Shown here one piece after another: positions 7,722-48,175 of a stretch of 49,126 nucleotides of DNA; position 1 is the first letter of the stretch, and every line of letters begins with the position of its first letter. A program made the position numbers and the translations under genes. Where the stretch lies: the NCBI GenBank assembly GCA_001643675.2, contig LSRY02000081.1:1-49126 (forward strand), given 5' to 3'. Below the pieces are notes generated by a model. The model did no database searches. It was not told the origin of the DNA and saw nothing but the letters and a program-made list of their open reading frames with translations. The stretch comes from Monocercomonoides exilis PA203 (taxonomy: Eukaryota; Protista; Preaxostyla).

Positions 7722-9189
7722 ATGTTTAGCACTTCCAAAGTGCATTATAGTTTCGACAGAAAAGTAATTAAACGTGAAGTCGCTCATATTTCAGGCATAT
7801 TTAAAATGCCATATGAAAGAGCTTTGTACATTCTTCGAGCTTTTATGCTTGAAGACTCTTTCGGATCGCAGCCAACGATTTTATCAAATCGTGTTTACGT
7901 TTGTATATTTTTAATTTGCTTTTTTATGTTTATTTTAATTATTAATTTTTGTTTTTTAATTTTTAAAACAACAATTTATATTTTCACATAAAAATAATAA
8001 CAACATGTTTATCAACAAGCGACTGTTATTCAAAAGTCAGTGATGTGCAACATTTAGCAAATTCTGCTCTTTTTTACCTCTCGTTAACTCCTCACAACAA
8101 GCACAGACACAATCTTCTCTTCAGCAGTTACAGCAACAACAGCAGCAGCAGCCACAACAACAACAGCAGCAGCAGCAGCCACAACAACAACAGCAGCAGC
8201 AGCCACAACAACAACAGACTATTCCAATGTCTTCTGCGCAGTCACCTTTTCAGACTCAACCTCAATATAAACCTCAACCTCAAAATCAAAATCAACCTCA
8301 ATCTCTTCTTCATCCGCAGCAACAGCAACAAACTTCTATTTATGACTTCACAAAAATCAATACAGAAAAGGACGAAAAAGTTCATCCACAAATTCACATC
8401 ATTTCGATAAATTTTGTATTTATTTTAAAGCTAATTCTTCATTTCAAATAAATACAAAAGAAGCAAAGAAAAACACAAAACATTCGACTTTTTCTTCAGT
8501 AATTACAAAACAAACAAAACAACAATATGCTTTATCATCATCTTTTTCTTCATTATCTGCAAAAGAAAATTCAAGATCCTGCGTTGTGATGCTTCTTTCT
8601 TCACAAAGAGGCTTGAAAAATAATGGCAGCGTGTGCTCTTTTCTGCCATTTGTCAATGCATGGCTTCTCTTGATGTTAAATTTATAGACATTTCGAAAAT
8701 GAACAGTGTGCAAAAACATTCATGCAGCTGTTTCATCTTCTTCGAATCTCTTCGTTAAATTTTAATGTGTGGGATGGAGGTCAGATTAATAAATTTTACG
8801 ACATTTATCTTGGAGGAAAGAATCAGCCAAAAGAACTGTCTGCTGTTTTTAAAATAAAGTTCTTTCCAAAAATTGTAATGAAATAAATGATATGTTTGCC
8901 ATCATTTCACCAAATGTTGAAATGTGTGTTCATTGTCATGATCGCTCCATTTCAAGAATGAGCCATAAGTTTTTTGTTACAATTAGAGGATCAGATGTTG
9001 TTTCTGGTCTTCAAGATTTAATAACTTGTAATTTTTTTAGTTGAGAAGAGAGAAGGAGAGTGTGTATCATGTCACAAAGATAGACAATTTTTGAAATATG
9101 TTCGTTTTTGTATTTTCCTAAAGTGTTTAGTGTTTTATTCAACGTTGGTGATTTTTTTCTGTAATTGCTCCTCCTCTTTCTATTCATTT
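7722..9189 (+). pseudogene. USP (peptidase C19) paralog, 5' portion, interrupted by the giant transposon
   Basis: The N-terminus MFSTSKVHYSFDRKVIKREVAHI..KMPYERAL matches MFNIGRKHHGMSRKSIKADVDSI..NMPYDRAL of the gene at 20837. It continues with Cys box RGLKNNGSVCS..ICQC (about 8608), VWDGGQINKFY, CVHC..FFVTIRGSDVVSGLQ, CVSC and VIAPPLSIH, all colinear with the 17280-20837 gene. Multiple frameshifts. Confidence 0.85.
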
Positions 9190-9270
9190 GGGTGATTTTT
9201 TTGATATCATAAAAAAGATCAAAAATCGAAAAAATAAAATTTATAGAGGTATTTATTGATCAATAAATTA
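9190..9270 (+). repeat. Left (type A) terminus: TIR plus subterminal sequence
   Basis: GGGTGATTTTTTTGATATCATAAAAAAGATCAAAAATCGAAAAA. A near-identical inverted copy ends at 40962. Confidence 0.85.
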
Positions 9271-9644
9271 AATTGATTTATTTCAAGTATTAAGCTTTTA
9301 TTTCTGTAATATGTATTTGTTTTATTATTATATGCAAAAAACATACCTTTTTAATGTTTTTGGTGAAAAAGAATTTTTGATCAAGTTTTATAAAAAATTG
9401 AAAAATCAATCTTTAAAAGGAAAATAGATATTTCATAATTGGCAAAACAAAATATTGCAAAGAAAAAGTTTACAAAGAAGAATTTTAAAGAAAAAAAGAA
9501 ACAAAATTGTTAATTTTTATTGATCAAAAATGTTAATTTTTCTTTTTTTTCCCCTACCTTTGTATAGCCAACAAATCTCCATTCCTTTTATTCGATTCAT
9601 CGGATTCATCAAACGTTAAACGAAATCGTGGAAAATTAGAAAAG

Positions 9645-9890
9645 CTGAGTTCAATGGATGGATCCCCCTCATTGCCCAGAACAAAATCGTTGCAAATGGT
9701 GGAACTGATGCTGATGCCTGTGGCAGACCCCAACAGACCCCATGTGCCACCATCGAGTATGCCCTCAACTGCTTCATTTCCCTCCTCCAAGATGCCTCTC
9801 TCACACTCCTCAGCTCAATATTTGTTCCTCTTCAAACACTCACTTTCAGCGCGGTTGACACCACAATCACAGGCGATGATGAAATTTATC
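9645..9890 (+). pseudogene. Fragment of a beta-helix (pectin-lyase-like) surface-protein family gene, paralogous to 26505-26740
   Basis: NGWIPLIAQNKIVANGGTDADACGRPQQTPCATIEYALNCFISLLQDA versus NGWLPLIAQNKIVSNGGSDVDACGRPQQTPCATIEHALTSFISLLHDA. Confidence 0.75.
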
Positions 9891-10399: not shown

Positions 10400-13300
10400 G
10401 CCAAAATAGAATTTCTTGTAGATTGCATGCCTTTTGATCAGCTTTTCTCGATAGGATTTAGAATCATTTCCGTTGCTGTGTTAGGTTGGTTGAAATTCTA
10501 TGTCTGAATAAATATTTCTTTCGTCTTTCTGAGTAGGAATGAAAGACGAGGCCTGATGATGAATTTGACGGGAGCTGAATGAAAGAGAAGGAGCAGAAGA
10601 TAACGATGGTGAAAGAGAAGACGAAGAAGTTACGGAAGGCAGGGATAGCGGAGAAAGAGAACCAGGATCAGCAAGACTAGCAGAAGATAGAAGTTTAGCT
10701 TGGGACTGCAGTGAAGGAGATAAAGATGTTCTGAGAGAAAAAGAAGATTGCTGTTGGATGTTCATAAACAAGGAAGAATTGACAAGTGATGAAGTTCAGT
10801 GAGAAAGAGGATGAAGAGCAATGTTTGAATTTGCGTCAAATTCTGCAGTTGAATCAAAAGGCGCAACCAAATTGAGGGCAGGGTATTTCTGCATCAGATT
10901 CATCACCATTGAATTCTGCGATGTGAAGAAAGATTCCAACTTTGAGAAACACAACGTATCTCTTTTCCCAGGCACACTGCTCAGACTGAATGTTCTTGTC
11001 CCTTTCTCCTTCTGAAACAGCAGAGGTGATCCTTTCCCTGCTCCTTTCCTTCCCTTTCTGTGTGTCACCTCTGCTTCCTCTTTGTGTGTCCACCAGCCCC
11101 TCCACTTCATCCTCCTTCCTCTTCTCAGCTCCGCCCGGCTTTGCCACAGCCCACTCTTCAGCGCACTCATCAGATCCAACCGCGTTCTTGTCTGCCTCGC
11201 GTCGACTGCTGCATACACAGGCTCTTTTCGCATCTTCCACACAAATTGCCCATTTTCCTCGCTTTTGATACGCACATAACGGTAGGGCACATCCAGTTCA
11301 TCGCTCAAATCTTCCAGGTCAGAATTTGCGAGGTCATTCAGCATGCAGTCCAATTTCCGCTCTCTTGTCAAAATTGGCGTTTGACTTTCTTTCGCCTCTT
11401 GCTGCACATCGCTTGTCATTTTGCTCTCTTTCTGGTTGGTTGGCGTGCCTGTCTCAAGGTGTGGTTGTAGTATTCCTTGGATGCTGCTAAACAGATTCTT
11501 CTCTTTTACTTCTTTCTCCATTTTCCTGCGCTCCCGCTCTTCTTTCTTCTTTTGTATTTCCTTCAGTTTCATCAGTCGAAGCAGTTTTTCTCTGATCATC
11601 AGATTCCAATGAACAAAATATGATCTTCGCTTCTTCATCGTCTTCCTTCCCTTTCTCATTCTGAAATTCATCTTGCATCACCCTTGTCACTTCTTTGTTC
11701 AAATCCTTCATTCCTCATCACAGCCAACGTCACCCCTTCTCCTCCACCGCCAACAACTGTTGATGGAAGCGTTATTGGTGCACCAACAGCTCCTCTCCCC
11801 ATCTCCATCTCTTGGCTGTACACAATCAACGCTCTCCTCCAACTCCTCTTCATCCACCGTCCATTCGCTTCCCTCGTGTAAAGTGAATCGTTCCAAAGTC
11901 ACCTCCTCCGGAAGAATATTGTTTAGGCTGTGGAGAATGTGATAGCGTTGGAGACGGAATTGTTGTTCTGTTACTGCTGCTGCTTCTGTTTTTGCTTGGA
12001 TTGTTATGAAAAAGGCTCTGGTTTTGGCTCATCTGAATGCGTTTCGTCTTTTTGCCGTTTCTTATTGATTCTTTTGCGTTTGTATTCTTTTCTGCTTCTT
12101 TTTATTGTCTTTGCTTTTGAAGCAGCTTCTTTGGGGATGTTCATTGAATCCTCCAAAATTGCTTTTTGATTTTCTTCTTTTCCTTCATCTGTATTGCCTT
12201 CAACTTCTTCCCTGTTTCCATTTCCATTTCCAGAATTTGTTGCTTCTTTCTCTTCTTTCTCACATTCTTTATCATCTCCTTCATTTTTTGCAGCATTCCC
12301 ACTCATTCCTGATCTTTTTATAGATTCATCAATCGGCGTCGGAGAAAGCAGCAAGTTTGGTCTGACCATCAAAAGCACTTCGTTCACAACAGAATCACGT
12401 TGATGCTCAAGCGCCTGATAATACCTTCGCATCAACCTCTGTTTCTCTCTCCGTTTGTACCTCTTCTCTCTTCTCTCTTCTTCATCACTGATGATGGAGC
12501 TGTCGTAAAGGCATTCGCTTTCTTCATTTTACTTCGGTTCCTTTAAAGAATTTCTTCTGATCAGTGAATAATTCTCGTTTTCTTTTGCTTTCACTTTATT
12601 TTCTTTTTCATCATCATTGTTATCTCCTTCATTAGCAGGCTTCAATACCTTCCTCAACTTAATTTGTCCTCTTATCCTTCGCTCTCTCTCTTCTCTCTCT
12701 TCCTCTTCTCCAGATTCTCCGCATATCGCTCCACCATCCGAAACTCTGCAAACAGCGGCAGCGCCTCAAACACATCTGGTGGGAAAACAAAATATTGCAT
12801 TTTCCTTCTTCTTCCGAACTGCTGCCTCATCCTCCTTATCTGCTCTTCGCTTGTCAGAAATCTGTTTCTAGAAGAGCGAAGCAACGAGGAAGAAGAAGAG
12901 GAGGAGGAGAAAGAAGAGGAAGAAGAACAACGTGAAGCACCAGCAGCAGCAGCCACTTGTGCACAGCGGTTGAGATAGCGTCGGCGGAGGAGTGGATGCA
13001 TTGCTCTTATGCGGCGAGCCATAGCAATTTCAGAACGATGAGGTGGTTTTGGATGGAGAGAGAGGTCAGTTACTGCTGGAGAAGATGAGGAAGATGAAGA
13101 GGAGGAAGAAGAAGTTGAATGAGATGATTGAGGAAGAGAAAGAAAAGATTCATTGGACAATGAAGAAGGAGATGTGCCTGTTCCTGTGCCAACACCAGCA
13201 ATTGAATGTGTCAAAAAGGTTTGTGTTGAATTTTGATTGCTTTTTCTCTGTCTTTGTCTTCGAGGCACATAAGATGGATTCTGCAGAGTTGCTTCTTGTG

Positions 13301-14750
13301 GCGGAAGGTTCACAGGAAGATGCAGACGCGGCGCATGTATTCTTTTGAATTCTTCGATGATTTCATCAATTTCTGCTTTTTCTGCTATTTCTTGTGATGA
13401 ATTCACTTCTGACTGTACGGATGAAGAGGAAGATGAAGAAAAATATGATGATGATGATGATTTCCGTATTGATGTCAATGATAACGCTTATTTCTATGAC
13501 TATGCCTGTTCTACTTCATTTGTCTGTTTCTATCTCATAAACATTCGCACACCGGAAACACACATTCTTCTGTCAAATCGTCTGTCATTGGAATAATCTG
13601 AAACCAAATGCCGAAGGCTCTCGTTTTCGCTGATTGGAGCTAAGGAGTGGCAGAAGCGATGATTTGATGCAAGAACAGCTTCAGAACAGAATTTGGCGTA
13701 GAAGAAGAGGCTGAAGAAGAAAGTGTTGATATTTCATCTGCATTGCTCCACATCTCTTTGTCTTCATCTTCAGTCTTTTCAATTTCTCTTCCTTCTTTTT
13801 CACTTTTTCTCTCTCCTTCTCTCTTCCTCCTTCTTTCTCTAAATAACCTCCATTTCATTAATGAATATCTTATATGGGAACAATAATTTCTTCAACTCAT
13901 CATCCGACGCTGCTGTTAGCTATATAAAATAAATGATACAAAAGACTCCATTTTTCTGTCTATTGTCTTTTTGTTAATAAATACCTGTGCTTGAAACGCC
14001 CAGCAGCGGTGGTGCAAAGTTTGGAGAGAGGAAGGAAGAGACGACGTTATTGATTAAGGAATGCGCTTCAGGCGTGAAAACATATGAATACGATGGGAAG
14101 AATTGAGCGATCAGTTCATTGATGTTCTTTTGGTGGAAGGAGGTTCTTGTAAAAAAGAAGAACGTTGGGATGAGTTGGAAGATGTTGAAGATCTGCAAAA
14201 ATCCACATATTGATGGCTCGTGGTAGCTCTGTTTGTGCTTGTGATGTTTCACAAAAAAGATGTTCTATCTATTGGAGGATATTTGAGGAAAGGGAGCTTT
14301 TGGTGGAAGCTGAAATCATTTTTGAGGCAAAGTGAGAAAGAAGAGAGGAGGAGAAGGAGATCTGTGGTGTTTGAATGAAGTGTCATTCACAGAAGATAAG
14401 GAGTGACATTGAAAGAGGAGAACTTTTATTGGAAAGAGGAGATAATTCCTGCTTTTGAGAAGCGCACATGACTTACTCGATCATGGAAACAACAAAGCTG
14501 CTTGTGTATGACTGATTTGAGAAGGAAGAAGAAGAAGAAGGCATTGATGACGAAGAGAAGAAATGTTTAGTGGTCTGTGAGAAGAGGAAGTCTGGTTTCA
14601 TGTGGAATGAACAGTCAGCTGCAACACAATGACAATAGTAGAAGCCAAATGCGCAGAAGAGGGTTCCCGGTTCAGTCTTTTTCATCAGCTCTGACTCCAA
14701 TGATGATAGAAATGATGTGAAGCGGTTGTGGTTTAGACACAGTGCTCAAA
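10400..14750 (-). pseudogene. Large degenerate Ser/Glu/Arg-rich hypothetical gene (cargo); family not recognised
   Basis: A chain of minus-strand ORFs (13974-14252, 12672-13478, 12004-12435, 10796-11671, 10481-10771) with coding-like composition, broken by frameshifts. Confidence 0.4.
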
Positions 14751-15419
14751 CTTAGAAAAAAGAAGCTGTATAAAAAAACATGAAAAGGGATAGTTCATCG
14801 TTTACGTATCAATTAATAGAAAAAAATTAAAATAAGAGTTTGAAAAAACTAAAAATAGAAAAACAAGAAATATGATAAAAACAATAATAACAATAAGATA
14901 AAAAATTTCAAACCTTATTAAATGATGAATTGCTCTTTCATCGTATCTTGTACAGAGCTTATTAGCAATTGTTTGAATGAGTCCAATCTGACTGGAAAGA
15001 TTGAATGAATCGGTGATTTTCATGCAGAGGTGACACAAACAAAAAAATCGATGAAGATTGAAAATAAGCACATTCACAAAATGGACGTTGCTGTCAACAC
15101 ACATAAAAAAAGATGAAGTTCATAATGAATGATGGAAAAAAGTTCTGAAAATTTCAAAAATTGAAAAAAATATATTTAAAAATAAATACATAATAATTCT
15201 TTGTTATAATAAAAGGAAAATTTCAACTCACACCTCATCGCTTCATATCTTCTCCATTGCAAAAGCAGATCCGTCTGGAACTCTTTTCTTTTCTCTCGCT
15301 GAGTTAAGAATCTCCTCAACCTCCTTCACCATCTCCGCTTTCCTGACTTATCTCTTCTTCGAGAAATCTGGCAACATTGAATGGAAAAACTCAATTTCCG
15401 CGATTATTGCTGTATTCAC

Positions 15420-15940
15420 TTGCTGTTCTTGCAAAGCTTGCTGCTCTGCGCTCGCTCAACTTCGACTCTTCTCCAAACTCCTCCAATGATATAAATTATG
15501 TCTTTTTTCGATCGCAATCTTCTTTGGCCGTATGACATTCTTTTTTTGTCAGCGTTTCTGCCCCATTTGACACAAACAGCGAAGAATCCAACGCAGACAA
15601 ATTGATCCCACTGATGTTTCCATTTCCCCCTCTTCCTTTGCTGCTTCTTCCACATTCATCAGTAACTGGTCTGCGTGTTGTGACTCAAATATAACCTCAC
15701 GAAGCTTACACATTCTCTTCTGTTGTATCCTCCCAGGCTGCGCGGATAACAGTGCAGGTTTAAGAACTTTGCAAGGTGGTCCGCACCTAAAATGAGCAGG
15801 TCGTTCGTCGCCCACTTCTCATCGACAGAGAGTCTGCCGTCATAAACAATCCAGTTCTCGTTTAGCACATAGAAGAGGTTCGTGTCCACGTACCGCACCG
15901 CACACAAAATATACAGCGCGCAATCGCTGTTCACCTGAAG
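15420..15940 (-). pseudogene. CFAP61-like (flagellar protein, FAD/NAD-binding-like region) gene fragment (cargo)
   Basis: CALYILCAVRYVDTNLFYVLNENWIVYDGRLSVDEKWATND resembles the CFAP61 motif VD...F..LN...LVYD.RL.ID..F.TND as I recall it. Frameshifted downstream. Confidence 0.55.
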
Positions 15941-16936
15941 TATCCTCGTCGGCTTCTCCTGTCACAGCCCTGGAACAAATTCATAGCGTGCTGTGGATCG
16001 GACGAAGGCTGTGGGGCAAGCACAAGAGAAGAGAAATCGCAGTTAACATGCTGAGTATTCTTCGCATAAAGTGCATATGGAAGATGTTGACCTTCTCCTC
16101 TTTGTCATCTGCCTCGTCCCGCTTGTCAAACATCCTTTAAACCACAGACACTCTTGACGCCATTCCTCTCCTCCTTTCCTCAGGACTCTTATTCCTTGTT
16201 CCTCATTCTTCTTCTCCTTCAGGAGCGATTGCAGATGGCAGATCTTGTCCAAGTTTTTGTTCTTTGTTTCCTCAAATCGCATCTACTTCAGCTGAATAAG
16301 ATTTGTGACTGGAATTAATGATAAATCCTTTTGCTTCATCCTTCCATTTAGACTCCTCAACCATCTGTGCCTTTGTGAAATTTTTTCTGTTTCTTTTTCT
16401 TTTTCTTTTCTTTTTCTTTTTTTCTGCCCCTCTTTTTCGTTCTCAATCTCTTTTTCTGTTGCTCCTTCCACTTCCTCGTTTTCCCAAACCTGTTCCATTG
16501 CCTTCCTCTTGCCCCTCTTCTTTCCTTTCTTCAGGACCCTCAGAGCATGAATCTCTGGAAGAACCTGTTTCAAACATAATATCAAATTCACGAGTTCCGA
16601 TGAACTGCTGTTCGATTAGCTCGTGTCTTTGGTTTTGATCTATTCAAGCAGCTCCATCTTCCGCTCATCTCCTGTTGAGAAGATGATAACACTATTATGC
16701 AACAAATGAAACTTATACAAAAAAGACATTATTACAACCATGACGAAAATTGCGGGAAAAATTAAAAATAATAAATCGAAAGGAAAAAGAAGAATACGAA
16801 GATGACGCTTGCGAAGATTATTGGCAATTCAATTGTAATACCTAAATATTAAATTACAAAGGCAATTATCATCAACTGAACGAAATATTTGAAAATTGAT
16901 TTATCTTATATTTTTTCAAAAAAATTTATTAATTGA

Positions 16937-20200: not shown

Positions 20201-20837
20201 AGAGGGTAAAATGAAAATGTTTCTTTTCTTTTATCTTCTTCGTCATATCTCCTGCTCGATGATGTGTCGCTTTCTTCATCAAAACTGAGCAAGAATTCCT
20301 TACTGAAATCTTCATTTATTTCACTTCTTCAAAATGTATTTTCTTTCGGAAGCAGTTTCCTTTTTCTTTGTTGAATCCAATTAGCATCATCATATAAGGA
20401 TATTTCTATATTGTATCCGTGTTCATTTCGTAATTCCTTTTGTGTATAATTTTCTGTTAATGCAATAATCATCTTATTCTTGATGGGAGCAGAAGCATCA
20501 TTGAACGCAAACTTCAATTCTTTCACAAGACACGTGAGAGGTGCTTCAAAGAAGTTTTCGAAAGAAAGATAAATTTATAAATAAGGAAAAAAATGTTCTC
20601 GCAAAGGAAAATGATGAAAAAAAATTTAGAATCATTACAATAAAAAAACAAACAAAGAGGTGATTTCATGCAATCAAAACAAAGCAATTTGCCTAAATCG
20701 TTTTCATTCACGAACTTCGTAAACACAAGCAAGGCTCTATCATATGGCATATTACGAAGCAATTCTTCGATGCTGTCAACGTCTGCTTTAATTGACTTCC
20801 TACTCATTCCATGATGTTTTCTTCCAATATTGAACAT
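17280..20837 (-). pseudogene. Ubiquitin-specific protease (C19) gene: N-terminal domain, long Ser-rich linker, USP catalytic domain; no transposase core
   Basis: Cys box KRGLVNTGSVCSLSSVCQC, Zn-ribbon motifs CIHC and CNRC, His box YDLVGCIIHSTAIYEQGHFIAIV, then NDNS. There is an in-frame TAA at 17790-17792 and several frameshifts. Confidence 0.8.
18790..18962. repeat. (GAGGAA)n microsatellite encoding poly-Ser in the USP linker
   Basis: Near-perfect GAGGAA hexamer run. Confidence 0.9.
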
Positions 20838-21016
20838 AGAAAAATATCTTTTCTTCAATTTTATCAGCAAGAAATAAATATTGATTGAAGATAGTTAAAA
20901 ATAATGAAAATACAAAATTATGAAATTTCAAATAATGAATTCAGAGCTGTTCTTAACCTCTTTCACTAAGATGAATAGAAAATGAAAATAGGAAAAAATA
21001 TTTTTAAGTGATTTTT

Positions 21017-27675: not shown

Positions 27676-27871
27676 TTGTAATTTTTATCGTTCAATATGA
27701 GGTTAAAAAAAATTCTGAAACATATATTTCTTATTTGAGCAAAAATATTGATATTTGGTTTTGTTTATCGAAATTTTTATATTGAAAGTACAATTAAAAC
27801 AATAATTGTTGAGCTGTTAAACTTTTATTAATTGATAATAATTCCATAATAAATTGCAAAAAATCACAAAT

Positions 27872-30800
27872 ATGTCCTTTTCTAAACAAGAGTCAACTCT
27901 AAATTCACGATGCAACGTTCTGTGGAAAGAAATACAACGCATCGGTGGAAATGACGTTGATTCATTGCTCGTCTATTTGTTTTACAACTACAGAAAATCA
28001 TCTGCAGTTATAAATGATTTACTGAAATCCTTGAATGGTTTCAACTTCAAAATTTTTTGATTGATAATAACTTATATTTTTCTCTTGAAATATTAATTTT
28101 TAATTAATATTTGTTATTTTGTTATTAAAAAAACTCAGAATACTACGAAATACTTCTTAAAGATCTCTCAGTTGTGTACAAGCACGCACAGTTGCACACG
28201 CAAACGATGATCCTTCAAGCACTTACGCGCAACGCATCATTATCTGAACTTCTGGACTATGGATTTGACATCACTGAAGGAAAGTTTAATTATGCAAAAC
28301 AAACTCTCACAAAAAACCAAGGATTTTTAATACCGGCACAATTGCCTCACACACCATCGTGTAAAAGTGGTTTGTATTGTATTTTTCTATAATTTCATTT
28401 TTTACTGTCTTTTTGTTTATTCATTTATTTAACTTTTTTGAGGTCTTAATGAACAAGATTGGGAAAAGGGCAACAATTGGATGTTGGCCCATTCCACAGA
28501 GGCATCAACTTCACTGCAATCAGCCAAGAAAAAACCAAAAAAAAGTTCCTGATTACGCACAGTTCATTGAGGAATCTGCATGGGATAATATTATCATTAC
28601 AGAAAAAATAATTCTCACAATATACAATCTTTTCCATCAGAAAAATTATGCCAACAAAATAAAAAATCAAATATTATATCAGAAAAAAAATCTTCTCCAT
28701 CTCATGCAGTTAACGATCCTATTAACACTCCACTTCGAGCTGAAAGATGGACTACAAAAATCAAACAAAATAATACACTTCATTACCATCGAACTTCTTC
28801 ATCACCAATACAATTTCATAAACTAGTTAAACAAAAATCTCCCATTTCATCATCATCTTCTTCCTCTCCTTCTTCTTCTTCTTCTTCTTCTTCCTCCTCC
28901 TCCTCCTCTTCATTTTCATCATCATCCTCATCATCATCTCTTCTTTCTCTCTCTCTCTCTCTCTTCTCCTTCTCCTCTCCCTCTCCCTCTCTCTCTTCTC
29001 TCTCTCTCTCCCTCTTCTTTTCCTTCTCCTTCTCCTTCTTCCTCTTCTTCTCTCTTCTCTCTTCTTCTCCTCTCTCTCTCTTCATCTTCATCTCATCATT
29101 ATCATTCATCTTCATCTTCTTCTTCTTCCTCATCCTCTTCTTCCTTTTCGATCAAAGTGAAAAGAAAAGATACAATCAATACTTCTCCAGTTGACAAAGC
29201 AGCTTCATCTTTTTGCAACGAAAATATGTGGGTTAGCGGCCAACTTATGGGGTATGTCACCTCACCCACTCTTATTCCTCCTCATGCGTTCCAAAATCTA
29301 GTCTCATCTTTCACAAAAGAGAGCAACATTTCAACACAACAACAAAAGTCACAGTTTATTACAAGAGATAATTCAACAAATTTTGATCCGTTTATTTCTT
29401 CTTCATCCAAATCAACGGCTAATGTTTTAAAATTCACACCAAATACTCCATTAAAAACAGTAAAAGGGTTGGCAAATCTTGGAAACACATGTTACTTGGC
29501 ATCTCTTCTTCAATGCTGGTCCTCGATCTGCAGTTCAAAACCAACGATCTTCACAAAAACGCATTCAAATAAGACATTATCTTCTCGAATGATGAGTATT
29601 TGCAATCAAATCCTCAAAGATGGAACAAAAGTGCATTCATGGATCCCATCAGTTGTTAGCAAATGGGAAGACTTTTGCGGATATGGAAGCAAACAGCAGC
29701 AGAATGTTTCAGAAGCTTTCGAAAATCTTCATAAATTGTTTGAAAAAGACGGATTATTAAAACAAGATAGTTTCAATCCAGTTATAATTTCACATATGAA
29801 ATGCGTGAAATGTCAAAAACTCACATCACATATCGACAACATCAACAATAGCATAATCATCAATTCTTCATCTACTCACAATGGTTTATCTTCTTTGTTT
29901 TCAACTGAAATACTGGATGGAAAAAATAGTGTATATTGTTAAGAGTGCAAAGAAAAATGCTGTACTGCTTGTTGGGAGGAAATGATTTCATTTCCAGAAG
30001 TACTAGCCCTCTCCCATGAATGTGCTGATTCTGCTAGTTCTCCACCTTCTCGAACACTTCTTATCGAGACTGATATGTCGAATAAACGTTCATTTTGCAA
30101 AGGATTTGCAAATGAAAATAAAACTTCATTTCACAACAAAAATAAAGAAACAACATTCTATCACTTAATTGGACAAATCCTTCATAAACAGTTTGATAAT
30201 AGCAACGGTCATTACATAGCCGTTGTGGAAAGAAATAAAGGAATGAAAAAGATGTGGATCACCTGCAACGATGATGATATTGAGGCATTTGACAGTGATA
30301 AATGGTCAAATTCATGGAAAGATCTCTTTTCTCAGGGCTATATTCCTTCTTTATCATTCTACGTGAAAGAGAAATCACAATCAACTCAACCAAGTGTCCA
30401 ATTTTGTGGTTCCTCTTCTTCATCTTCCTTTCACAATCCAAAAATATCAACAATTCGTCCACAGAAACAACTCCCCCGTCATCGTTCATCACACCACCGC
30501 ATCGTTCAACTTCCATTCCTCAATTAACTTCATCAATCAGAACTGGTTATGGATTAGAAGCACTTAAAGAAAAAAGAAAGAAAACGGGCATCTTTTCTCC
30601 CAATGAAAAGAGATTAATCTTCAAGCCAAAGACGAAATTATGGAAAGAGTTTTCAGAAGAAACAAACATCAAAGTTTCTCTGTCACATTTCTTCAAACTC
30701 ACCACCAATTTCTCCAAAGCGAAAAGACGAACGGATCTCTGCGGCATGTGTGAGAAGTTGAACTATCTGGAAAACAAATTGAAGTCATCGCAAAACAAAA

Positions 30801-31854
30801 ATGGACTTTCTAAGCTGAGTTTCATACACTTAAACTACTTCGACAACATCGTCTTGTTGCTGAAATGCAACGAAAACATTATCAATCAACTGTTGATAAT
30901 CTGAAAGAGGGAGAAACAGTCTTCGTCTTTGACTTCAAAGAAAAATGGAAACTCCCCTATCAGAAAAAATCAACTTCAACAAGAATTCTTTAATTACCAA
31001 CAAGTATCTCAATTCACAATCATCTCTCTTCAAAAATTAATAATCAACAAATAAAAAGAACTTTCAACTTCTTCTCCGACTGCCTCTCAAATGATCACAG
31101 ATTTGTTATTGAGTGTCTGGAATCTGTGATCAAAAGACACTTCTTCTCAGACACTCACACTTTTAAGTTCTTCTGCGATTCGGGTCCACACAACCGAAAT
31201 CGCTTCCTCCTTCACTTCATTCTCTCCAAACAATCCAAACTTCTCAAAAAGAAAAATACACAACTCAACTTCTTCGCTGAGCACCACGGAAAGAATATTT
31301 GTGATAGTGAATTTGGTGCATTAGTTAATTCTATCGACAACAATCTTTCGACAGAACACATCACCACACTTCATGACTTGATCGACTTCTTCGAAAACAA
31401 TATGAACACTTCGACATCTGTTTCATCATCATCACAATTTAATGTTTTTGAATCATCCTCATCAAGCAACTCCCCATCGTCATCATCTATCAAGGAGTGT
31501 GTGCATGAGAGGTACTTTGAAGAGTATGTACCATCTCAGCAAATTTCATGGCCTTCACTGTCAGTCCCTCACATGAAGGACTACTTATTCTTTGAGCGCA
31601 AGGGCTCATTTGTCTGCGCATCTGCTGTTGGATATCTTCTTCAACGCTCTCTTGTTGCAATCGAATCTTCAACAATGAAAGAAAAAGTTCAACGTTCAAG
31701 AAAGTCATTTCACTCTGATATCACATCATCTAACTCTTCTCTTCTTTCTCAATCTTCTCAAGATCTTCTTTCAAGGAGATTTGATCTTCTTCTTGACTCT
31801 TCATCTTTGATGAATCTCAAAATTGTATTAATGGAGGTCCTATTAAGAAACTAG
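27872..31854 (+). CDS. USP (C19 deubiquitinase) - Sola-like DDD transposase fusion gene (frameshifted in this assembly)
   Basis: ATG at 27872 and phase-1 introns at 28038-28138 and 28370-28442. USP part: Cys box KGLANLGNTCYLASLLQC (Cys codon 29490), His box ILHKQFDNSNGHYIAVV (His 30210) and WITCND. Transposase part: RRTDLCGMCE, VFVFDFKEKWKLP (D 30931), FFCDSGPHNRN (D 31177) and FFAEHHGKNICDSEFG (D 31303). Confidence 0.8.
29466..30370 (+). other. USP/UCH catalytic domain within the fusion gene
   Basis: Canonical GLxNLGNTCY, QQNVSEAF (QQDxxEF box), CVKC and C*EC zinc ribbon, FPEVL, GHY and ND. One in-frame TAA at 29940-29942. Confidence 0.9.
30600..31700 (+). mobile_element. Sola-like DDD transposase domain
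   Basis: The order DxCxxC, FD, CD..P..N, HGK..CD.EFG fits the Sola-type RNase H-fold DDD arrangement. Frameshifts near 30812, 30965 and 31033. Confidence 0.75.
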
Positions 31855-32826
31855 TTGTTGTGCATGCTTAGCTGGCACTCTATCGGAAGGGTGCTGGACA
31901 TGACTGTTCGTATTAGATATTGCAGCCTTCGGGCTGCTTTATCCGGACCTGGATACGACGAACAGCCTCCCAGGTGCACAATAGTTAGAATCCGATTGTT
32001 TTCTTGTGCTTTTTGTTCCGATGATGTCCCTATTTTCACTTTATTGTAGTCCCGAATGCAATTTATAAATGAATAAATAGAGATTCATTTTTTGATGGGT
32101 GTTGTGAAGAGTTTCAATGATTTTTGGATTGGATTTTAGGAAAGGAGAATAGCTGAGAGTGTGAAGTGATGTTTAATTACTGTGTCTGCCTTTTTTCTCT
32201 GTTGAATTTGATCTTTTGAGTTTGGACAAGAGAAATATCAGAAAGTGTAGAGTGAGAAAAAACAAAAGATAAACATTCAAGTTTGTTTTTGGACTTAAAG
32301 TATTTGTAATCTTTTTCGTTTGGAATTGACTATGACACCATGTATTTGTTGTAATAGTTATGCTTTTTATTGAATCTTTTATTGTTCATGCAAATTGGTA
32401 TGGAATTGACAATTGGGGAATGTTTTAATGATGATGTGGGAAAAATAATTTTTTTTAGAAAGTGATGCAACAAGAAAAGAAACTTATTTGTTGTTTTCTA
32501 TTTTCAAGATGATTAATACAATGAAGTGTTAATGTTATTTATGTGTTATTTTGTTTTATGATTGTTATCAAATTAGCAATGTATTTATTTTTCTGTTTTT
32601 CTCATCACTGAATATTCATCAACCTTTTGCTGAAACTCAACAATGAAGATATTGATATCAAAACAGTTATATATTGAATAAAAGAATAATAATAAGCATT
32701 TTCATTCCAAAAACAAAACATTTTTTGAGAGACAAAAATTCAATGATATTTTTCTGATATGAAGTGTTTATTCAATGAAATATGAAAAAATTAATTTTCA
32801 CCTCATTTGAACTAACAAAATTTAAT

Positions 32827-33221
32827 AACTATTTTCTGATGACTTGTAAGCATTATTAAAGCAATAATATTCACAAATTAAATGAATAATATTCAAACAA
32901 ATATCACATTCCCAAAATTAATGATCATAATAAAACCAAATTATTTGTGCATTTTGGTCAACATTGAAAGTCACTTTTTCTGTACTTAACAAGCTGAAAA
33001 TATCATTTTATGTTGTTTTAAGCAAAAATAAAATGTCCAAAACGCCCATGATCTTATTAATATATTTATAAACATTCTAAATTCTTGATCATAAGTTAAC
33101 CAAATTATTTGTGCGTTTTGGGCAAAAGTGGAGGAGGACTTTTCAACACCAGATAGTTGTTAAATATCATTTTATGTTGTTTCGAGCAAAAAAATGAAAT
33201 GCCCACAACGCCATGATCTTT
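32827..33221 (-). repeat. 395-bp inverted repeat, right arm of cassette 2
   Basis: Ends ...GCCCACAACGCCATGATCTTT. It differs from the left arm only by a few substitutions and a 2-nt homopolymer difference. Confidence 0.92.
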
Positions 33222-36200
33222 TCAATTTATAAAATATTTTTAAGTGAAATGAAGAAAAATATCAATTTGAAGATATTGCATGCAATTGATGAATATTTGA
33301 TTTGACCGTTTAAAAATATATTGTTAGCTTGCAAAATATATAAGACGTGTGCTTTTTTTCGTGTGTTCACTCCAATTATTTCTTCATTTGAACAATTCAT
33401 TTTCTGATTATCTCAATTTCTTATTTTATTTGTTTTTTATGAAAACAGTTCATCATTTATCTTTTTTTTTTTTTGAAAAAAGGTGCGCATTATTTCAATG
33501 AGTTTAATGGAACACCTTTCTGAAAAAACTGCTTTTTCTTTTTGTGTTGTTTGTTGTTCAAAGGGCTTTTCACTCTCTTTGATTATCATCATCAACAACA
33601 ACAACCAACCCCAAATTATCAACAAGGGAATCGCTTCAAAAACTTCTGTAAATGCTTCTCCATCCAATCATCATTCATCAGGCTCGAAGGAGTTGGCTGA
33701 TTCAAAAATTCACTGAACCGAAAACAATGCTAAGTTTCACGGTTTATGTGAAACACAAAGACATCCACAAGATCATAAAGAAGTTTCTCGAGATCACATA
33801 CGAAAATGAGAAGATCAAACAAGCGTGATCATGCAAATTCAAGTGAAGATCGCCAGAACACCAAAATCTACTGGATCTGATAGAATTCAAAGAGCAGTGA
33901 AATAATATTGTTCTTCATCTGTTTCATTGTCTTTTTCCTCCACCTCCTCTTATTCTTTTTCGTTATCGTTTTTGTCATCTTTGATATTTTTCTCTTCATC
34001 AAAGTGGGATTAGATGTGAAAGCCGCCTCCACTGTTGGAAAAAGACATGTATTACAAGCACAACTCCATCGCAACTTTCTTTTTCAATTTTTTTTCCAAC
34101 ATTTTTAAGGGAGCATACTCAAAAACCGCAGAGGCTATAGGCATATCTGCGTACGACAGGAGGCTCAATCCAAAGAGAAAAGCGTCAAAGGAATTTTACT
34201 GGAAGGGCAGCTGCTGGAGACTGTGTGCTTCTTGCAGAGCGAAATAAAGCGCGTTGATTTTTCTCAGTTGGTAAAGGGAAAGCAGAATTCGAAAGACAAA
34301 CTTCATATTTTGCACTCAAATCAAGTTTGTGTTCATACGCGATTTCTGATCGGGTCTACAATTTCTACGATCACGAAAGAGTGTTTATGAGCCCATATGA
34401 CGAAATGACTGCGATACAACGTTCTGTTTCAAATGAGCCTTGCCTGACTGACACGGAACCCTCTGTCATTTCTTCAGAGCCCCAAAAAGAATTAGTATAA
34501 GTTGTAGATTCGAAAAGAGAAGCGTTGAGACAACAATCCACAAGCTCATTGCAGAATCTTCCAATCTGCAAGACGTTGAGTTGACTGTGCCGTTTGCATG
34601 GCATGAAAGCCCTGAGCCGCTCGATGAGTTACTCGCTCAAACATCGAAAGAGAATGCAACAGCATAAAATGCGTTGCCTTTTGCATCATTATTATCAACA
34701 GCATCTACTGTTTCCTTGGAGACCGGTTCTGCATCCTCCTCCTGCCTCTATTCCTCCTCACTGTAGCAGCAGCTTGTCTCCTCTCTCTGTCTTCTTTATG
34801 ATGATGATCACGCTTCTCAACTTCTCTTCAAAGCAACACTAGCTGGAAGCCTGGGGTGCACTCAAAAATTGTCTGCTACACGCGCTGAAAAAACGAGCAA
34901 TGTTCGACTGCTTTTGTCTTAAGCGAATATCCTTTATCTTCTTTTTGTTCATTCGTCTGGGCAGTTTTCAAAAGGAAAAGATATGGCCGGACCTTCTGAG
35001 ATATGCGTGAAGCTCTGAGTTCTCACTGAGATGTGCGGTAACAGCTTGAGCACCTCCAGTTCCTTAACAAAGTTCACGAATTTGAAGGCTGGCTGAACGT
35101 TGTGACTGTTTGGTGAAATTCGTCATCTTCTTCTTCTCTCTTCTGCATCTTTCCTGAAACATCTTGCAGAATCAACGGCGGTTGTGTGAGGATCGTTCAT
35201 TTCCCTTGAGTAATCTTCTGCGTTTCTTTTCTCATGCTGTTCAAGTTATTCTGACTACTGCTGCTGGATCTTATTTAAATAGGCGAAATGAGAATAATTC
35301 GGTTAACGACAGCTGCTGTGGTTCTGTGCGAAACGGCAATGTGAGAGATATCACAAACGTGTGAAATGATTTGGTCGTTGTAAGGCGATTCAGAAGGACG
35401 GAAAAGAGTGGAAGAAAACAATCTGTTAATCACAAAGGATTCACAATTGGAGATGGAGTACGATTGTTGATGTGGGTTGGAGGTTAAGGAGAAGAATGAA
35501 ATGGAAAAAGATGCGGAAAATGTGAAGAGTGAGAAAGAGACTTTTGAAGGAGGAATGGATGAAGTCAATAGCAGAATGAATACAGAAAAAGAGGAGGCTG
35601 AAGTTAACGTTGTTGATGGTTTTGATTTTGACATAGGAATGGAGAATAACGAGCTTGAGAATGAGAGAGAAGGAGAGATGAATGTTGAAAGCGGAAAAGT
35701 TGAAAAGAAAGGAAAAGAAGTGAAAGAAAGATACAAAAATTTTTTTCGTCAAAAGGATAGATGAAATGAATAAAAGAAGAAGAGAAAGAAGAAGAAGAAG
35801 AAAGCACAAACCCACTGTAATAAGCCACAAAGATCTGATGCAGATTCTCAGTGCGTTGATTAAAAATCACCTGGATGTGACAACTCAGTCGCTGAACAAT
35901 AAGAAAAAGCCATATTTTTCAGCTTTTTGTGCAATTTCAGCAAGAATTAATAAACCAAGCACATCTCAAGTGAAAGAAGGTTGTTTTTATGGTTTGGTGA
36001 AGCTGTTGGATGAAAATTTATCCAAAATTGTGAACGCAGTCACGGAAGAAAAGAAAGAGCAGGAAGAGGAAGTTGGAAATGGTAATAAAAATTAGATGAA
36101 AGACGTCAAAGGTGTGGAAGAGAATGGAAGTTGTCTGATGTGCAGCGCAAGAATCGCTGGTTTTATAATTGTTTATGTTTTAGATGGGAAAGAATTTGGT

Positions 36201-37379
36201 TCGACCTTCTCTTTTCTTTGCGACAATATTAGAGTTCCTCATCATAATCTTCTTCTTCTTCTTCCTCTTCTTCTTCTCTTCCTCCTTTTTCTTCCTCCTC
36301 TTCCTCTTCCTCTTCCTCTTCCTCTTCCTCTTCCTCTTCCTCTTCCTCTTCCTCTTCCTCCTTTCCTCTTCCTCTTCCTCTTCCTCTTCTCTTTCATCTT
36401 CTCTCCTCTTCCTCTTCCTCTTCTCTTCTTCTCCTTCTTTTTCTTCTCATCTTCATTCTTCGTCCCTTCTTCTTATTTTCCCCCAACCCCACTGACAATA
36501 CACCATCAACTCCACCTCCCAGTGTCTGGCGCTCTTTGAACATTTCAACGGTTGCCACTTCTTTTCTGGACACGCACCATCGCACAGCGTTGGCTGAATT
36601 GTGTTATCACTTTGGCTTCTGCTGCTCTGCTCCGTAGGATGCAGACGATGCAAAGGATACGTTAAGAGTGATGAAGATCTCATCTAAACATCTGCCACCT
36701 GAGAAGAAATTGTAAACTTCTTCTGATTCTGCGTCTTCTTTGGAATTTGCTCCAAGGATTTCGGCAACCCTCGGTTCCTTCTTTCTCTCATTCCTCGTCC
36801 TCTTCCCGCTTTGAAATCGTTGTTTTCTGCTTTATTGTGTTCCATTCATCATCAGCTTCTTCTCCACCATCGCCTCCTCCTTTTTCTTTATTCTTATCAT
36901 CATCATCACCACCATCAATGCATTCTGTGGCTTTGCTGAATGTGCATTTGAACTGTTTTCCTCTTCCACAGAAGCGCATTCCGCTCTGTTTCAGCACTTC
37001 GTACGGCTTCCGCGCTCCGGCTGTGCTGAACAGGGTGAATGAGGCGAATGGGCATCGAATGAGAAATGGCGGTGGAAGAGGGAAGGAGACTTCAAGGCAC
37101 ATTGCGTTCATCTAGCTCGCTTTATGATACCGCCAAGAAGCGAAGAGAGAGAAGTTCAAGTTCAAATGGAAGAGGCAAAGAAAGCTGAATTCATAAGAAA
37201 AATGAGCGCAGAGCAGAGGAAAGGGAGACAGCAGGAAGAGCCAAAGACGAAGATGAAGACAAAGAGAAAGACGAGTTTCACTCGCCACAAATTGGCACTT
37301 TCGACACAAGACTTACACAGACATCAACAGGAAAGGAGGAGGGACATGGGAATGAGAAGAAGGAGGTGATATTGAAAAT

Positions 37380-39280
37380 GAACAGCAGCAAACATTTTAT
37401 TCGTTCGACAATACACTGTCGTCTGCTAAGTTGCACATTGAAAACATCACAGCTTCATCGACATTAGCTACTCCTTCTTTAATTGTTCCCACACACACAA
37501 TTGTCTGCCACTTCTGTTCTTGTTGGAACTCCGGCGAAGCCACAAACTCTTCATTTTCTGCAACAGACTCTTATTAGCTCTTGCTGAAGTCGCTCTAAGC
37601 ACAGAACATTTCTTAAACTTCTTTTTCTCTTTTTGCTCAAATATTTACATTCTTGCGGCTTTTTTAAGTGCTGTTCTTGGGAAGAAGATATTTTTGCAAT
37701 CTGAAAATGCTTTGGAAGCAGGAACATCCGGACCATAGGCGATGTATTTGAGTGACAGTGAATTGTGCTGAACAACTGTGCATATGTTACAAGCGGATTC
37801 ATGAAAGCGATGTTGAGTCCACCGGCATCGGAGCAGACGAAGTTGCTGTGGGAGAAGTGGTAATTCCAAACGGCAAGGCTGTTGTTTGTTAACTCACAGT
37901 TGTCGGCATGCGCGCAACTGCTGATCTTGGAGAGCAAGATGTTAATGAAGAAGGAATTCATCATTCTAAGGGAGCTTCATGACAAATTTGACGTTGAATA
38001 AGAAGAATAGCGCTGTCTGCTTTAATGGAGAGATCTGTTGCGAGAGATTTTCAACGAAGTTGCCAAATCCAATGTCAAGCACGTGCAAGGCTGTGAAGTG
38101 CCGAAGAAGATATTGAAGCTAAGAGAGAAAAGATCGTGCTAGAAAGAAGTGGATGTGCTATTCTGAGAGAGAAAAGATACAGGAAGATGTCTGGAGGAAT
38201 CCGTCGAAAATGTGAAAGACTCAGAAGTTGATTGAAGCAAAGGAGGAGTGGAAAGAGGAGTGGAATGAGATGAGGATGCAGTTGTTGTTTAATGCAATAT
38301 CAGCGAGCGGGAAAATACAAAGTGAACAAAAACACGATTGTTCGAGTTAGACCAAATTCGAATATTGGATAGGCAATTTTGGAGGAAGATATGGATAAAA
38401 ATTGCGGAGAAGGAGAAATAGAGGCCTAGCTGTGAGTAGCATTGCTTGGTGGAGGAGTCTGTGTCTTTGCAGAGGAATATCCTGTGGGTGCGGAAGAAAA
38501 GAAATGAAGGGCAAAATGTTAAAGTCGTGATCGGGATCGGTGTGAGAGGAATCAGAGCTTCAATTGGATGTGCTCGCAGCAAGAGAAGGTTGGGTGAACT
38601 CGATGGAAAAGAGGGACTCATCGATTTTGGCTGGGATATAGGAGCTCCGGAGAAAGAGTTCCATTTCCTCGGAAGGCGTCGCTCAGATGAAGCGGATGTT
38701 GAGAACGGAGACAGGGATTGGAGGAGCTTTAGCGGAGACGATGCAGTCTTTAAAGAGGTCGTCTCCTTCGGTCGACATATCGCTCACATAGATGGTGAAC
38801 ACACACGTCTCAACAGCACATTCCATTGCACATTCGCTCTCAGCATTTCACATAAGAGCTGGCCCCTTGCATAAGAGCGTAATGTGGCCTTGTTTGCACA
38901 TTCTCGTCTTAATACTGTTCTTGAGATTCAGATTCATGTTGCCTCAAGCAGTTGAGTCGGTCAGAGCAGACGGGAAAACTGCCATGAGTGAAGAATCAAT
39001 GGACAAAGTGAAAATGAATTGAAAGGATACAAGTACTGCAAAAGTGGATATAGAAGAGATGTGGAGAAATAGTCCAGGCAAGGAGACAGCGAAGATGGAG
39101 TTGTTTAAATGAGTATACACCCTGCTTCTTCTTCAATCATCGCAAACGAAAGGAGTGTTTGCAGAGTCTGTATGGAAAATGAACAGCCAGATAAAAGATA
39201 AACTCAGCTTTCAAGCAAGTCTATGCGTAAGATGTGGATGATGGAGAATAAAAGAGAATTGCTGTTAAGCAAAACATTTT
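37380..39280 (-). pseudogene. Degenerate gene, possibly of the beta-helix surface-protein type (cargo); duplicated at about 45660-47550
   Basis: Coding-like minus-strand fragments, such as NSFFINILLSKISSCAHADNCELTNNSLAVWNYHFSHSNFVCSDAGGLNI, with many stops. Confidence 0.3.
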
Positions 39281-39599
39281 TAAGTGAAAAAAACAGAAAT
39301 TTTCGTATTTCTTCTCATTTTCTTAATTTTTCTTAGTTATTTTTTTATCTTTGATCAATTTATTTAGAAAACTTCTCCAAAGAATTAATTGTTTTTTAAT
39401 AATAATTCATTATAAATTGTTGTTTATCCAATAAATGTCTTGTATAACTATCATATTTTTCTATGTGTAATTTTGAAAATTGTTCAGTTTTCAACAAAAG
39501 TTTTATGATCTTCAGAATTAATTTCTAATAATTTCTTTTCATAACTTATAAAACTAATTTATATTAAAAATATTATTGACTTTATATAGTTATCATTGT

Positions 39600-39957
39600 T
39601 AAATCAATTGGAAACAAATTGAAATCAACAAATAAATAAAAACAATAATAATTTGAGCAAAATATTTGTGAGATCATCACTTTCTTCTTCTTATCAACAC
39701 CACCCTTAATGAAAAATTTTTTGATCAAACGTCTGAATTTTTTATGATATCAAAAAAATCACCCATATCTTTAAAGATATAAAATATGGAAAAACAATTG
39801 GAAATAAATAATCAACAAATAAATTGAAAAACATTTGTAATAATTTGACAAAATATTTGTGATCATCACTTTCTTTTTTCTTATCAATTTTCACCAAAAA
39901 TATTTTTTGATCAAAATTTTTTGATCGGAATTTTTAATGATATCAAAAAAATCACCC
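39600..39957 (-). repeat. Two tandem right (type B) termini, ending at 39764 and 39957
   Basis: Two related units about 190 bp apart, each ending TGATATCAAAAAAATCACCC and followed by ATAT and ATTT respectively. Confidence 0.85.
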
Positions 39958-40210
39958 ATTTTGTTAATTCAGGGTTAGGGCCTGAGGATTTAAGAATATT
40001 TGATCCAACGGTTTCCTCTGAAGATTCATTCTTATCTTCTAGTTGATGATTGTTGATGTTGTTTGGATGTGTTATTCATTCATGTGTTATTCATTCAAGT
40101 TTTTGGCCAGCAAGTGGCAAATTTTTGAATGATGTTTCCATAAACCTGTTTTAACCATTTCAAAGTTTCAGTCTTTCATGTTGTTTGAAGTCATTTATGA
40201 AAAATGAAAA
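39958..40210 (+). pseudogene. USP paralog, 3' portion (continuation of 7722-9189)
   Basis: FVNSGLGPEDLRIFDP...GCVIHS...ND aligns with FVEKGPGPNDMEIKNP...GCIIHS...ND of the 17.3-kb paralog. Confidence 0.8.
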
Positions 40211-48142: not shown

Positions 48143-48175
48143 AAATACAATTCTTTTTTCTCTTCCAATGCAAAT

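Follow-up and report, generated by a model that had tools for sequence, protein, structure and literature searches.

A 30.8-kb stretch within the 49,126-nucleotide contig analysed here (the window; C82, LSRY02000081.1, from Monocercomonoides exilis PA203) is very probably one copy of a Sola2 family of cut-and-paste DNA transposons, whose transposase-carrying members span 19-35 kb and whose small members span 4-9 kb; together with the mechanism set out below, this is the best explanation of the data. That M. exilis holds a giant Sola2 family is seen directly in the element ends, the target-site duplications (TSDs), the empty sites, the spread of the whole unit over many loci, the identity of the transposase and the marks of selection. 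To judge from the copies compared, these giant units show repeated natural movement of 20-30 kb by a non-viral cut-and-paste element. An earlier note on this DNA had called the family undescribed, and no description was found in the literature searched.

At this locus, terminal inverted repeats (TIRs) had been placed at 9190 and 39957 with ATTT on each side, and both are present, in a perfect 21-bp inverted match between 9190-9210 (+) and 39937-39957 (-). The ends are laid out as follows.

9186..9189, + strand: left TSD copy, ATTT (the 4-bp overlap at 18 empty sites)
9190..9420, + strand: type A end, TIR 9190-9210 plus A-specific subterminal region; C68 has the same junction
39601..39764, - strand: inner type B end, TIR 39744-39764, then ATAT
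39791..39957, - strand: outer type B end (TIR 39937-39957); sequence weakly supported
39958..39961, + strand: right TSD copy, ATTT; same junction in C10 at 23254

The TIR match is not due to chance, since its exact 20-mer occurs 19 times genome-wide and a control pattern 0 times; type A ends number 108 in the genome. The 21-bp match is real, but the usual TIR of the family is 22 bp, because most copies have one more T, and short-read contigs supply that base at both right ends of C82. These short repeats start GGG, and Sola2 TIRs follow a 5'-GRG rule. On the right side, the inner B end is 96-98% identical to ends of C51, C10, C24 and C76 (the C76 match extending to 39797), and the outer B end is 79% like the inner. 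Because the outer end is almost without short-read contig depth at 39812-39912 and is absent from C10, where a single B end lies directly on ATTT, the element at this locus probably measures ~30.6 kb in reality, as in C68 and C10 taken together. The extra 193-bp right end is possibly an assembly or polishing duplicate, so that of the proposed 30,768-bp insertion the single insertion between TIRs stands and the additional right end is doubtful.

Joining the flanks in silico yields the peptide given in the earlier note, which aligns to the USP paralog near 17.6 kb at 14/25 positions, as had been claimed. Moreover, at 18 other M. exilis loci the two flanks, each searched alone, meet with an overlap of precisely 4 bp, and contigs C68 and C10 carry the same filled junctions as C82, which bears out the view of the region as a single insertion. 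Short-read contigs show the empty junction (run X4) and a loose end before 39957; among those listed, none spans either C82 junction, alignment having covered the right one. The split gene belongs to the cargo of another family member, in which it is the second USP gene. A host gene as target was rejected, since the empty sites lie ~1 kb from type A ends and an uninterrupted copy of the recipient-type element (C7, 1503585-1527394) has its own TSD. The C68 match to 8558..9189 stops at the insertion, and the empty site is stop-free across in C7, C18 and C43 (C10, C68, C76 and C7 were assessed through search coordinates). Three family copies are nested in the window, the recipient itself having inserted into the third at a position that corresponds to 32583.

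1..9185, strand not assigned: recipient element body, 95% to the C7 element
154-977, - strand: N-terminus of the recipient transposase
6209-7030: recipient cargo, SURP-domain ORF
8558..9189, + strand: 5' portion of the interrupted target gene, USP domain of the related element's second USP gene (coordinates transferred from C68)
39962..40285, + strand: 3' portion of the interrupted USP gene; approximate end coordinate
40943..40962, - strand: type A end of the recipient, then ATTT
40963..48142, + strand: third, outermost family copy, B arm plus type B end (TIR 48122-48142, flank AAAT)

An assembly artefact joining two unrelated ends is exceedingly unlikely. C82 is a small 49-kb contig, its interior is in part 100% identical to C12 and C76, its transposase is frameshifted and its right end has the near-absence of depth described above; however, a misjoin would not rebuild a gene that is intact at 18 loci, both junctions and a length of ~30.6 kb come from C68 and C10 together, and a colinear copy of 28.9 kb, flanked by a TSD of its own, lies in C51. 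Artefact plausibly fits the extra 193 bp and the indels alone.

Pairing of the element ends, as had been suggested, supports the transposon family. Among the ends listed, 41 of 46 hand-paired A/B ends have matching 4-bp TSDs (mismatched in five; shuffled mean 15), as do 23 of the 27 pairs of at least 19 kb, and no shuffle of 100,000 reached 41/46 or 23/27. Type A and B ends do pair at 19-35 kb with matching TSDs, as predicted: TSD-matched pairs among the ends listed number at least 23 of 19-35 kb and at least 18 of 4-9 kb. The TSDs of the 41 matched pairs (ATAT 22, ATTT 10, AAAT 3, ACAT 3, AATT 2, ATCT 1) are of the AT-rich 4-bp (AWWT) type of Sola2. Copies of the ~29-31-kb subfamily, 92-97% identical, occupy separate sites whose flanking sequences differ (C51, C12/C76, C29, C42, C24), and two 21-kb copies (C23 and C50) have different TSDs and are 0.8% apart in substitutions across a compared stretch of 7.7 kb. 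Element DNA amounts to 0.64 Mb in verified pairs and perhaps 2-3 Mb by extrapolation. A point against this reading is that near-identical copies may have been fused into chimeras in small contigs, C93 combining the left flank of C50 with another right flank.

These pairs bear on whether the giant units could be composite transposons or segmental duplications, that is, ordinary DNA between small elements, carried once and then copied by recombination. The mosaic arms common to the 4-9-kb members, the repeated sighting of one junction in C82, C68 and C10, and the additional B end at 39764, which resembles alternative-end use, would all suit such an origin. Against it, C28, C50 and C51 have just one A end and one B end each, with their own TSDs and flanks unlike the element copies compared, and the TSDs that match in the at least 23 giant pairs among the ends listed fall into four kinds. 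This explanation is largely refuted by the combination of distinct flanks and matched TSDs, and we regard it as highly improbable.

By homology, the transposase points to Sola2.

27872..31854, + strand: Sola2 transposase with embedded USP
within it: USP Cys codon 29490 and His codon 30210; a zinc motif of CxxC-H form; catalytic aspartates encoded at 30931, 31177 and 31303
27279..27714, + strand: left arm of an internal 436-bp inverted repeat, with 166-bp subrepeats and no TSD
32789..33221, - strand: right arm of the internal inverted repeat, 96.8% to the left

In the assembly, the gene has several 1-bp indels; it is open in C51 (1105 aa from the first ATG) and, at the same locus, in C10 (a 1128-aa frame). 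The genome holds ~105 transposase copies, 81-99% identical, dozens of them with open frames of more than 1000 aa. The protein aligns with Sola2_PPa-1 at 27% over 257 aa (BLASTP, E 1e-23) with the three aspartates aligned, and the phmmer match (P0124, E 7.9e-15) corresponds to Sola2_PPa-1 in file 3 of PMC3627910. An RNase H-like fold is predicted (pLDDT 86), with DDE transposases as top matches. A giant family driven by a Sola-type DDD transposase, as had been proposed, is in line with these results. The two USP-bearing genes match PF00443 (E 8.5e-14 and 8.8e-13), the USP aligns to the USP34 structure (E 4.7e-8), and the Cys and His boxes of C19 with catalytic Cys, His and Asp/Asn are present and kept in C51, C50, C87 and C28. 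dN/dS is 0.08-0.12 in the transposase core and 0.12-0.30 in the embedded USP; by sequence comparison, the USP domain in the transposase is under purifying selection. The literature searched holds no C19 USP inside a DDD transposase, no UCH domain occurs among 83 aligned core homologues (many of them fragments), and a length-limited search with the full-length protein for the fusion outside M. exilis gave four M. exilis proteins only. In Blattamonas, 48-bp inverted repeats spaced ~9.2 kb apart enclose the homologue, and no clear TSD accompanies them; no element ends were found round the Heterostelium gene.

The internal repeats raise the possibility that the autonomous transposon is an inner 5.9-8.5-kb cassette bounded by 430-530-bp inverted repeats, within a GGGTG-ended shell that would be a non-autonomous carrier mobilised by another transposase. 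The cassette surrounds the transposase in 6/6 full copies examined, in either orientation, with arms 93-98% identical, and synteny between subfamilies breaks at it. Yet the cassette is without TSD and its ends are ragged, three unrelated repeat sequences flank transposase cores that are ~90% identical, the cassette flanks are the same in C82 and C51, and it is the outer ends that show the short TIR and AT-rich 4-bp TSD described in Sola2 elements (PMC3627910). The internal repeats were accordingly rejected as true TIRs, being ragged, without TSD and unrelated between subfamilies, and a cassette transposing on its own is very unlikely. Within a copy, the two arms share diagnostic substitutions, and transposase orientation differs among copies.

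The remainder of the giant Sola2 element consists of a second USP gene and cargo.

9646..9847, + strand: short duplicate (87%) of the beta-helix family fragment at 26505-26706
10799..11677, - strand: cargo ORF with 37 annotated homologues, all uncharacterised M. exilis proteins
12007..16800, strand not assigned: further A-arm cargo, low-complexity ORFs with no Pfam match
17370..20870, - strand: second USP (C19) gene, transposase-like N-terminus without DDD domain; PF00443 E 9e-13
21360..24321, + strand: middle cargo ORFs, subfamily-specific, no family matches
25620..26823, + strand: piece from a large family of beta-helix genes, matching many copies grouped on C25 at 74-79%
33300..39600, strand not assigned: B-arm cargo

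The second USP gene, frameshifted in this assembly and open over 1077 aa in C51, has Cys and His boxes and is present in 6/6 full copies examined; it and the transposase are all that the six have in common. Overall, the cargo comprises ORFs confined to M. exilis and fragments of host families. The ORF at 10799..11677 has a dN/dS of 0.17-0.40 between the C51 and C87 copies, the A-arm cargo of 12007..16800 recurs in many family copies at 76-97%, and a 700-bp module (36897-37597) is found in many large and small members, inverted in the A arm of C28, C50, C93 and C23. An Rfam scan returned nothing.

A Teratorn-like alternative is that the element is a virus integrated in the genome, or a replicating relative of Polintons, with a Sola2 transposase serving as its integrase. 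The size lies within the Polinton range, and the encoded cysteine protease and mostly unannotated cargo could be read in this way. However, Pfam and PHROGs searches of ~30 ORFs found no viral or replication genes, polymerase, capsid and packaging ATPase included, and the core common to six copies is the transposase and second USP alone. Polintons/Mavericks are defined by protein-primed PolB, rve integrase, packaging ATPase and capsid, none of which was seen in the ORFs tested; here the integrase is Sola2. The 4-bp TSD also speaks against this origin, Polinton/Maverick TSDs being 6 bp. We give a viral origin almost no credence.

As a mechanism for the Sola2 family, the element-encoded DDD transposase would bind the 22-bp TIRs with their distinct A and B subterminal regions, and the whole unit would be excised and inserted with a 4-nt staggered cut at AT-rich A-x-x-T sites, mostly ATAT or ATTT. 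Comparison of copies suggests that elements may grow by nested insertion into other copies, capture host-family fragments, exchange arms between subfamilies and invert the transposase cassette between the internal 430-530-bp inverted repeats. A putative role of the transposase USP and the second USP would be to oppose restriction by the host, by stripping ubiquitin either off the transposase or off the chromatin of the donor or target site. A wider proposal, which we hold tentatively and consider rather unlikely as a whole, is that this non-viral giant lineage is still active, that its deubiquitinases serve specifically as a counter-defence making 20-35-kb cut-and-paste efficient, that the internal repeats allow the transposase cassette to be flipped like a switch or exchanged, and that selection retains some of the cargo, making the family a gene-shuffling vehicle behind a sizeable share of annotated M. 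exilis orphan genes.

M. exilis is a mitochondrion-less protist with 35% unclassified repeats (PMC8767320), part of which the giant Sola2 family accounts for, and some annotated orphan gene families of M. exilis are transposon cargo. As a culturable protist, it offers intact-looking transposase genes for tests, and the USP-transposase fusion makes ubiquitin control of transposition testable in one protein. Natural cut-and-paste cargo had seemed limited: Pack-MULEs are non-autonomous and under 7 kb, and the largest En/Spm elements, those of Chondrus crispus, reach 16-20 kb with 4-5 ORFs (PMC6431247). Both resemble the M. exilis elements in being DDE cut-and-paste units with gene fragments or extra ORFs between TIRs, but belong to different superfamilies. 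The at least 23 TSD-verified 19-35-kb copies, some less than 1% apart, point to larger units having moved repeatedly in nature with no more than a plain DDD transposase.

The likeness to Starships and Teratorn drawn in the earlier note overreaches, because the literature already has Sola2 elements of 10-15 kb that carry passenger genes and the cargo here consists of orphan ORFs and fragments, with no viral genes and no shown adaptive whole genes. Teratorn, a herpesvirus fused to piggyBac (41-182 kb; PMC6431247), is likewise very large and cargo-bearing, with a DDE transposase, short TIRs and internal inversions, but it combines a piggyBac transposase with herpesvirus core genes, whereas the M. 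exilis elements have a Sola2 transposase, a two-gene core and no viral matches in the ORFs tested. Starships (PMC12134995) are also very large mobile units with cargo, up to ~700 kb, moved by a tyrosine recombinase captain and carrying whole accessory genes; the enzyme here is an RNase H-fold DDD protein, and Pfam scans gave no recombinase match. Helitrons share a transposon protein with a deubiquitinase domain, their VTD domains (beside OTU) being active and proposed protectors of transposition proteins (PMC9741609), but they are rolling-circle elements with other deubiquitinase classes, whereas M. exilis has a C19 USP in a DDD transposase. The dictyostelid Sola2-Fanzor elements (DFa-1,2,3; PPa-1,4,5) have a homologous DDD transposase, TIRs of 12-22 bp, AT-rich 4-bp TSDs (ATAT, AAAT, ATTT), a second large gene and arms that vary between families; they carry Fanzor and occur in 2-7 copies, and those with tabulated sizes measure 10,254, 13,566, 14,423 and 15,292 bp (PMC3627910). 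The contrast drawn earlier with DDD/E elements of a few kb was therefore too strong, and the M. exilis elements are about twice, not ten times, the known Sola2 size. Unlike Sola2-Fanzor, they reach 19-35 kb, number ~105 transposase copies, combine a transposase-embedded USP with a further USP gene, and contain internal inverted repeats as well as cargo made up of several fragments.

In the giant element at 9190-39957 of contig C82, which makes up the entire window, the 21-bp inverted match at both ends and its ATTT flanks are present as the earlier note claimed, and joining the flanks computationally yields the peptide it predicted. When the left flank (8890-9189) and the right flank (39958-40960) were used as separate queries against the Monocercomonoides exilis genome, the two abutted at 18 loci with an overlap of exactly 4 bp, including the following:

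C7, 1504614-17, empty site (flank searches)
C43, 174577-80, empty site (flank searches)
C21, 1221659-62, empty site (flank searches)

The target, a gene encoding a USP (C19 deubiquitinase) domain, runs across the empty site without stops in contigs C7, C18 and C43 and is split into two halves in C68 and C10; short-read contigs also carry left-flank sequence continuing into 39958. The left junction is present in C68 (flank identity 99%) and the right junction in C10 (99% identity to 40900-49126), and therefore, judging by sequence, C82 probably represents the same locus, there in two pieces. Empty sites and both junctions thus uphold one giant insertion, but not its exact length of 30,768 bp, as the C68 and C10 offsets give about 30.6 kb.

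The two end types, A and B, have a common terminal inverted repeat (TIR) and distinct subterminal regions. The genome (101 contigs, 82,301,135 bases) contains 19 occurrences of an exact TIR 20-mer and none of a control pattern, and a length-tolerant search of the whole genome found 108 type A and 149 type B ends. Because most ends carry one further T, the TIR is 22 bp; short-read contigs supply this extra T at both right ends of the window. Here C82 has two type B ends, at 39764 and 39957, and C10 a single one, immediately on ATTT. The inner end and 33 bp of flank match C76, the outer end is only 79% like the inner, and read-contig depth is near nil across 39812-39912, a gap that is no proof by itself. 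The extra 193 bp are either a polishing chimera or genuine alternative end use. Indels in the C82 transposase are possibly assembly-derived; C10 has a 1128-aa open frame at the same locus.

Matching nearest ends by hand, among the ends listed, gave at least 46 A/B pairs, and in 41 of these 46 the two flanking 4-mers are the same (mean 15 and maximum 27 after shuffling). As the earlier note anticipated, A and B ends also pair at giant distances with matched target site duplications (TSDs): among the ends listed, 4-mers match in 23 of 27 pairs of at least 19 kb (shuffle mean 11.3, maximum 22), these giant copies spanning 19.1 to 35.0 kb, and in all 18 pairs below 10 kb. Three full copies were read end to end; all are bracketed by ATTT and have flanking sequence unlike element DNA:

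C28, 25.9 kb
C50, 21.1 kb
C51, 28.9 kb

The window's subfamily recurs on C51, C12/C76, C29, C42 and C24 (92-97% along cargo), and C23 and C50, at different sites, differ by 0.8% substitutions across 7.7 kb, which argues for recent movement. Verified pairs total at least 0.64 Mb, extrapolating to 2-3 Mb for the family, and the genome holds about 105 transposase copies (81-99% identical), dozens with frames above 1000 aa. C93 shares with C50 its left flank as well as 99% of the element, but on the right it runs into other sequence (ATAT where C50 has ATTT); small contigs in this assembly may be chimeric between copies that are nearly identical. At C68:181432-198863, C30:376907-429234 and C34:927793-958933, family copies lie head-to-head or tail-to-tail with near-equal scores, suggesting inverted duplications. 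A related TIR, GGGTGATTATTTTGAAATCA, with different subterminal sequence (C28:12604-15159, a 2.6-kb pair; C93:27573; C27:1028439; C88:20721) probably marks a sister family, perhaps the owner of the 40-55% identical M. exilis transposases.

A host gene as target was ruled out, since over 1100-8900 the flank shares 95% identity with the interior of another family member:

C7, 1503585-1527394, element with ATAT TSD and a transposase within

The recipient element holding the split gene has a type A end at 40962 and is itself inserted at an ATTT within a third copy, whose B arm extends to 48142. Read from its sequence, the window consists of three family members, one nested inside another. Sequence past the outermost B end (48142-49126) is repeated at several loci (83-89%).

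The C51 transposase (1105 aa) comprises, in order, a Ser-rich region, a USP domain (PF00443 match; match to the USP34 structure, E 4.7e-8), a zinc motif and a DDD core. At E<0.001 the core finds 655 relatives, among which the Asp and HxK motifs are invariant; it is predicted to adopt an RNase H-like topology (pLDDT 86), and the solved structures that it matches best, though weakly, are DDE transposases. Its proposed Sola-type identity is borne out by alignment with Heterostelium PPL_04538, which matches the named Sola2_PPa-1 (PMC3627910). By pairwise counting, in which some pairs are saturated, the core has a dN/dS of 0.08-0.12 and the USP one of 0.12-0.30. Homologue searches found the USP-transposase fusion in M. 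exilis only. In P0011, a metagenomic Sola2 homologue, an OTU-like motif (VPADGECG) is seen by eye upstream of the core, without a Pfam match, suggesting that a protease may have been captured separately in that Sola2 clade. In Blattamonas nauphoetae, 48-bp inverted repeats at a distance of 9.2 kb enclose a Sola2 homologue (L041:9749-18925), the right repeat having the first 7 bases of the M. exilis TIR; a TSD sought for this unit was not clear. An element at L041:4727-7877 has a 45-bp TIR and an 8-bp TSD.

All six full copies share just two genes, the transposase and a second USP gene, which has a weakly transposase-like N-terminus and retains its catalytic motifs. In C87 the open frame of this second gene contains about 20 near-perfect tandem repeats of a 60-bp unit (~21514-22700, counted from the A end), and at C80:1108783 its USP domain forms the C-terminal part of a 5878-aa open frame. 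Other content is mosaic: C87 combines an A arm as in the window's element with a B arm as in C28, and a 700-bp module changes arm and orientation between copies. Cargo includes a beta-helix fragment (74-79% to many copies on C25), a SURP ORF in the recipient element and an ORF whose 37 homologues are all uncharacterised M. exilis proteins; no viral genes were found among unspliced cargo ORFs. Cargo dN/dS, 0.15-0.45 for some and 0.6-0.7 for others, may reflect selection within the element or separate capture from differing host paralogs.

In every full copy the transposase is flanked by 430-530-bp inverted repeats (arms 93-98% identical) that lack a TSD and fall into three unrelated sequences in three subfamilies. 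Both arms of one copy carry the same diagnostic substitutions in the arm core (6 sites for C82 vs C51, 5 for C28 vs C50 or C93), position-specific differences are confined to near the edges, and transposase orientation varies among copies, towards either the A end or the B end. The pattern is consistent with arms that have repeatedly inverted or undergone conversion, and polishing could produce a similar one. At 16869-17101, downstream of the second USP gene, there is a diverged segment of the repeat.

Given family membership and the TSDs, the Sola2 enzyme would cut and paste the whole A-to-B unit with a 4-nt stagger, and copy comparison suggests that elements grow as they nest in one another, capture sequence and exchange arms. 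The USPs may be protective, as the analogy of the active deubiquitinases of Helitrons suggests (PMC9741609).

The M. exilis genome paper lists 35% unclassified repeats and, in the passages located, describes no transposon family (PMC8767320); nor, Repbase aside, did the literature searched yield a description of this giant family. New here are the defined ends, TSD statistics, empty sites, nesting and the tie to a named Sola2. A new transposon class was rejected, the elements being Sola2. Dictyostelid Sola2 elements are 10-15 kb long, have TIRs of 12-22 bp and ATAT, AAAT or ATTT as TSD, and carry Fanzor as a passenger (PMC3627910); compared with these, the M. exilis elements are larger and USP-bearing, and their standing as a new Sola2 variant is well supported.
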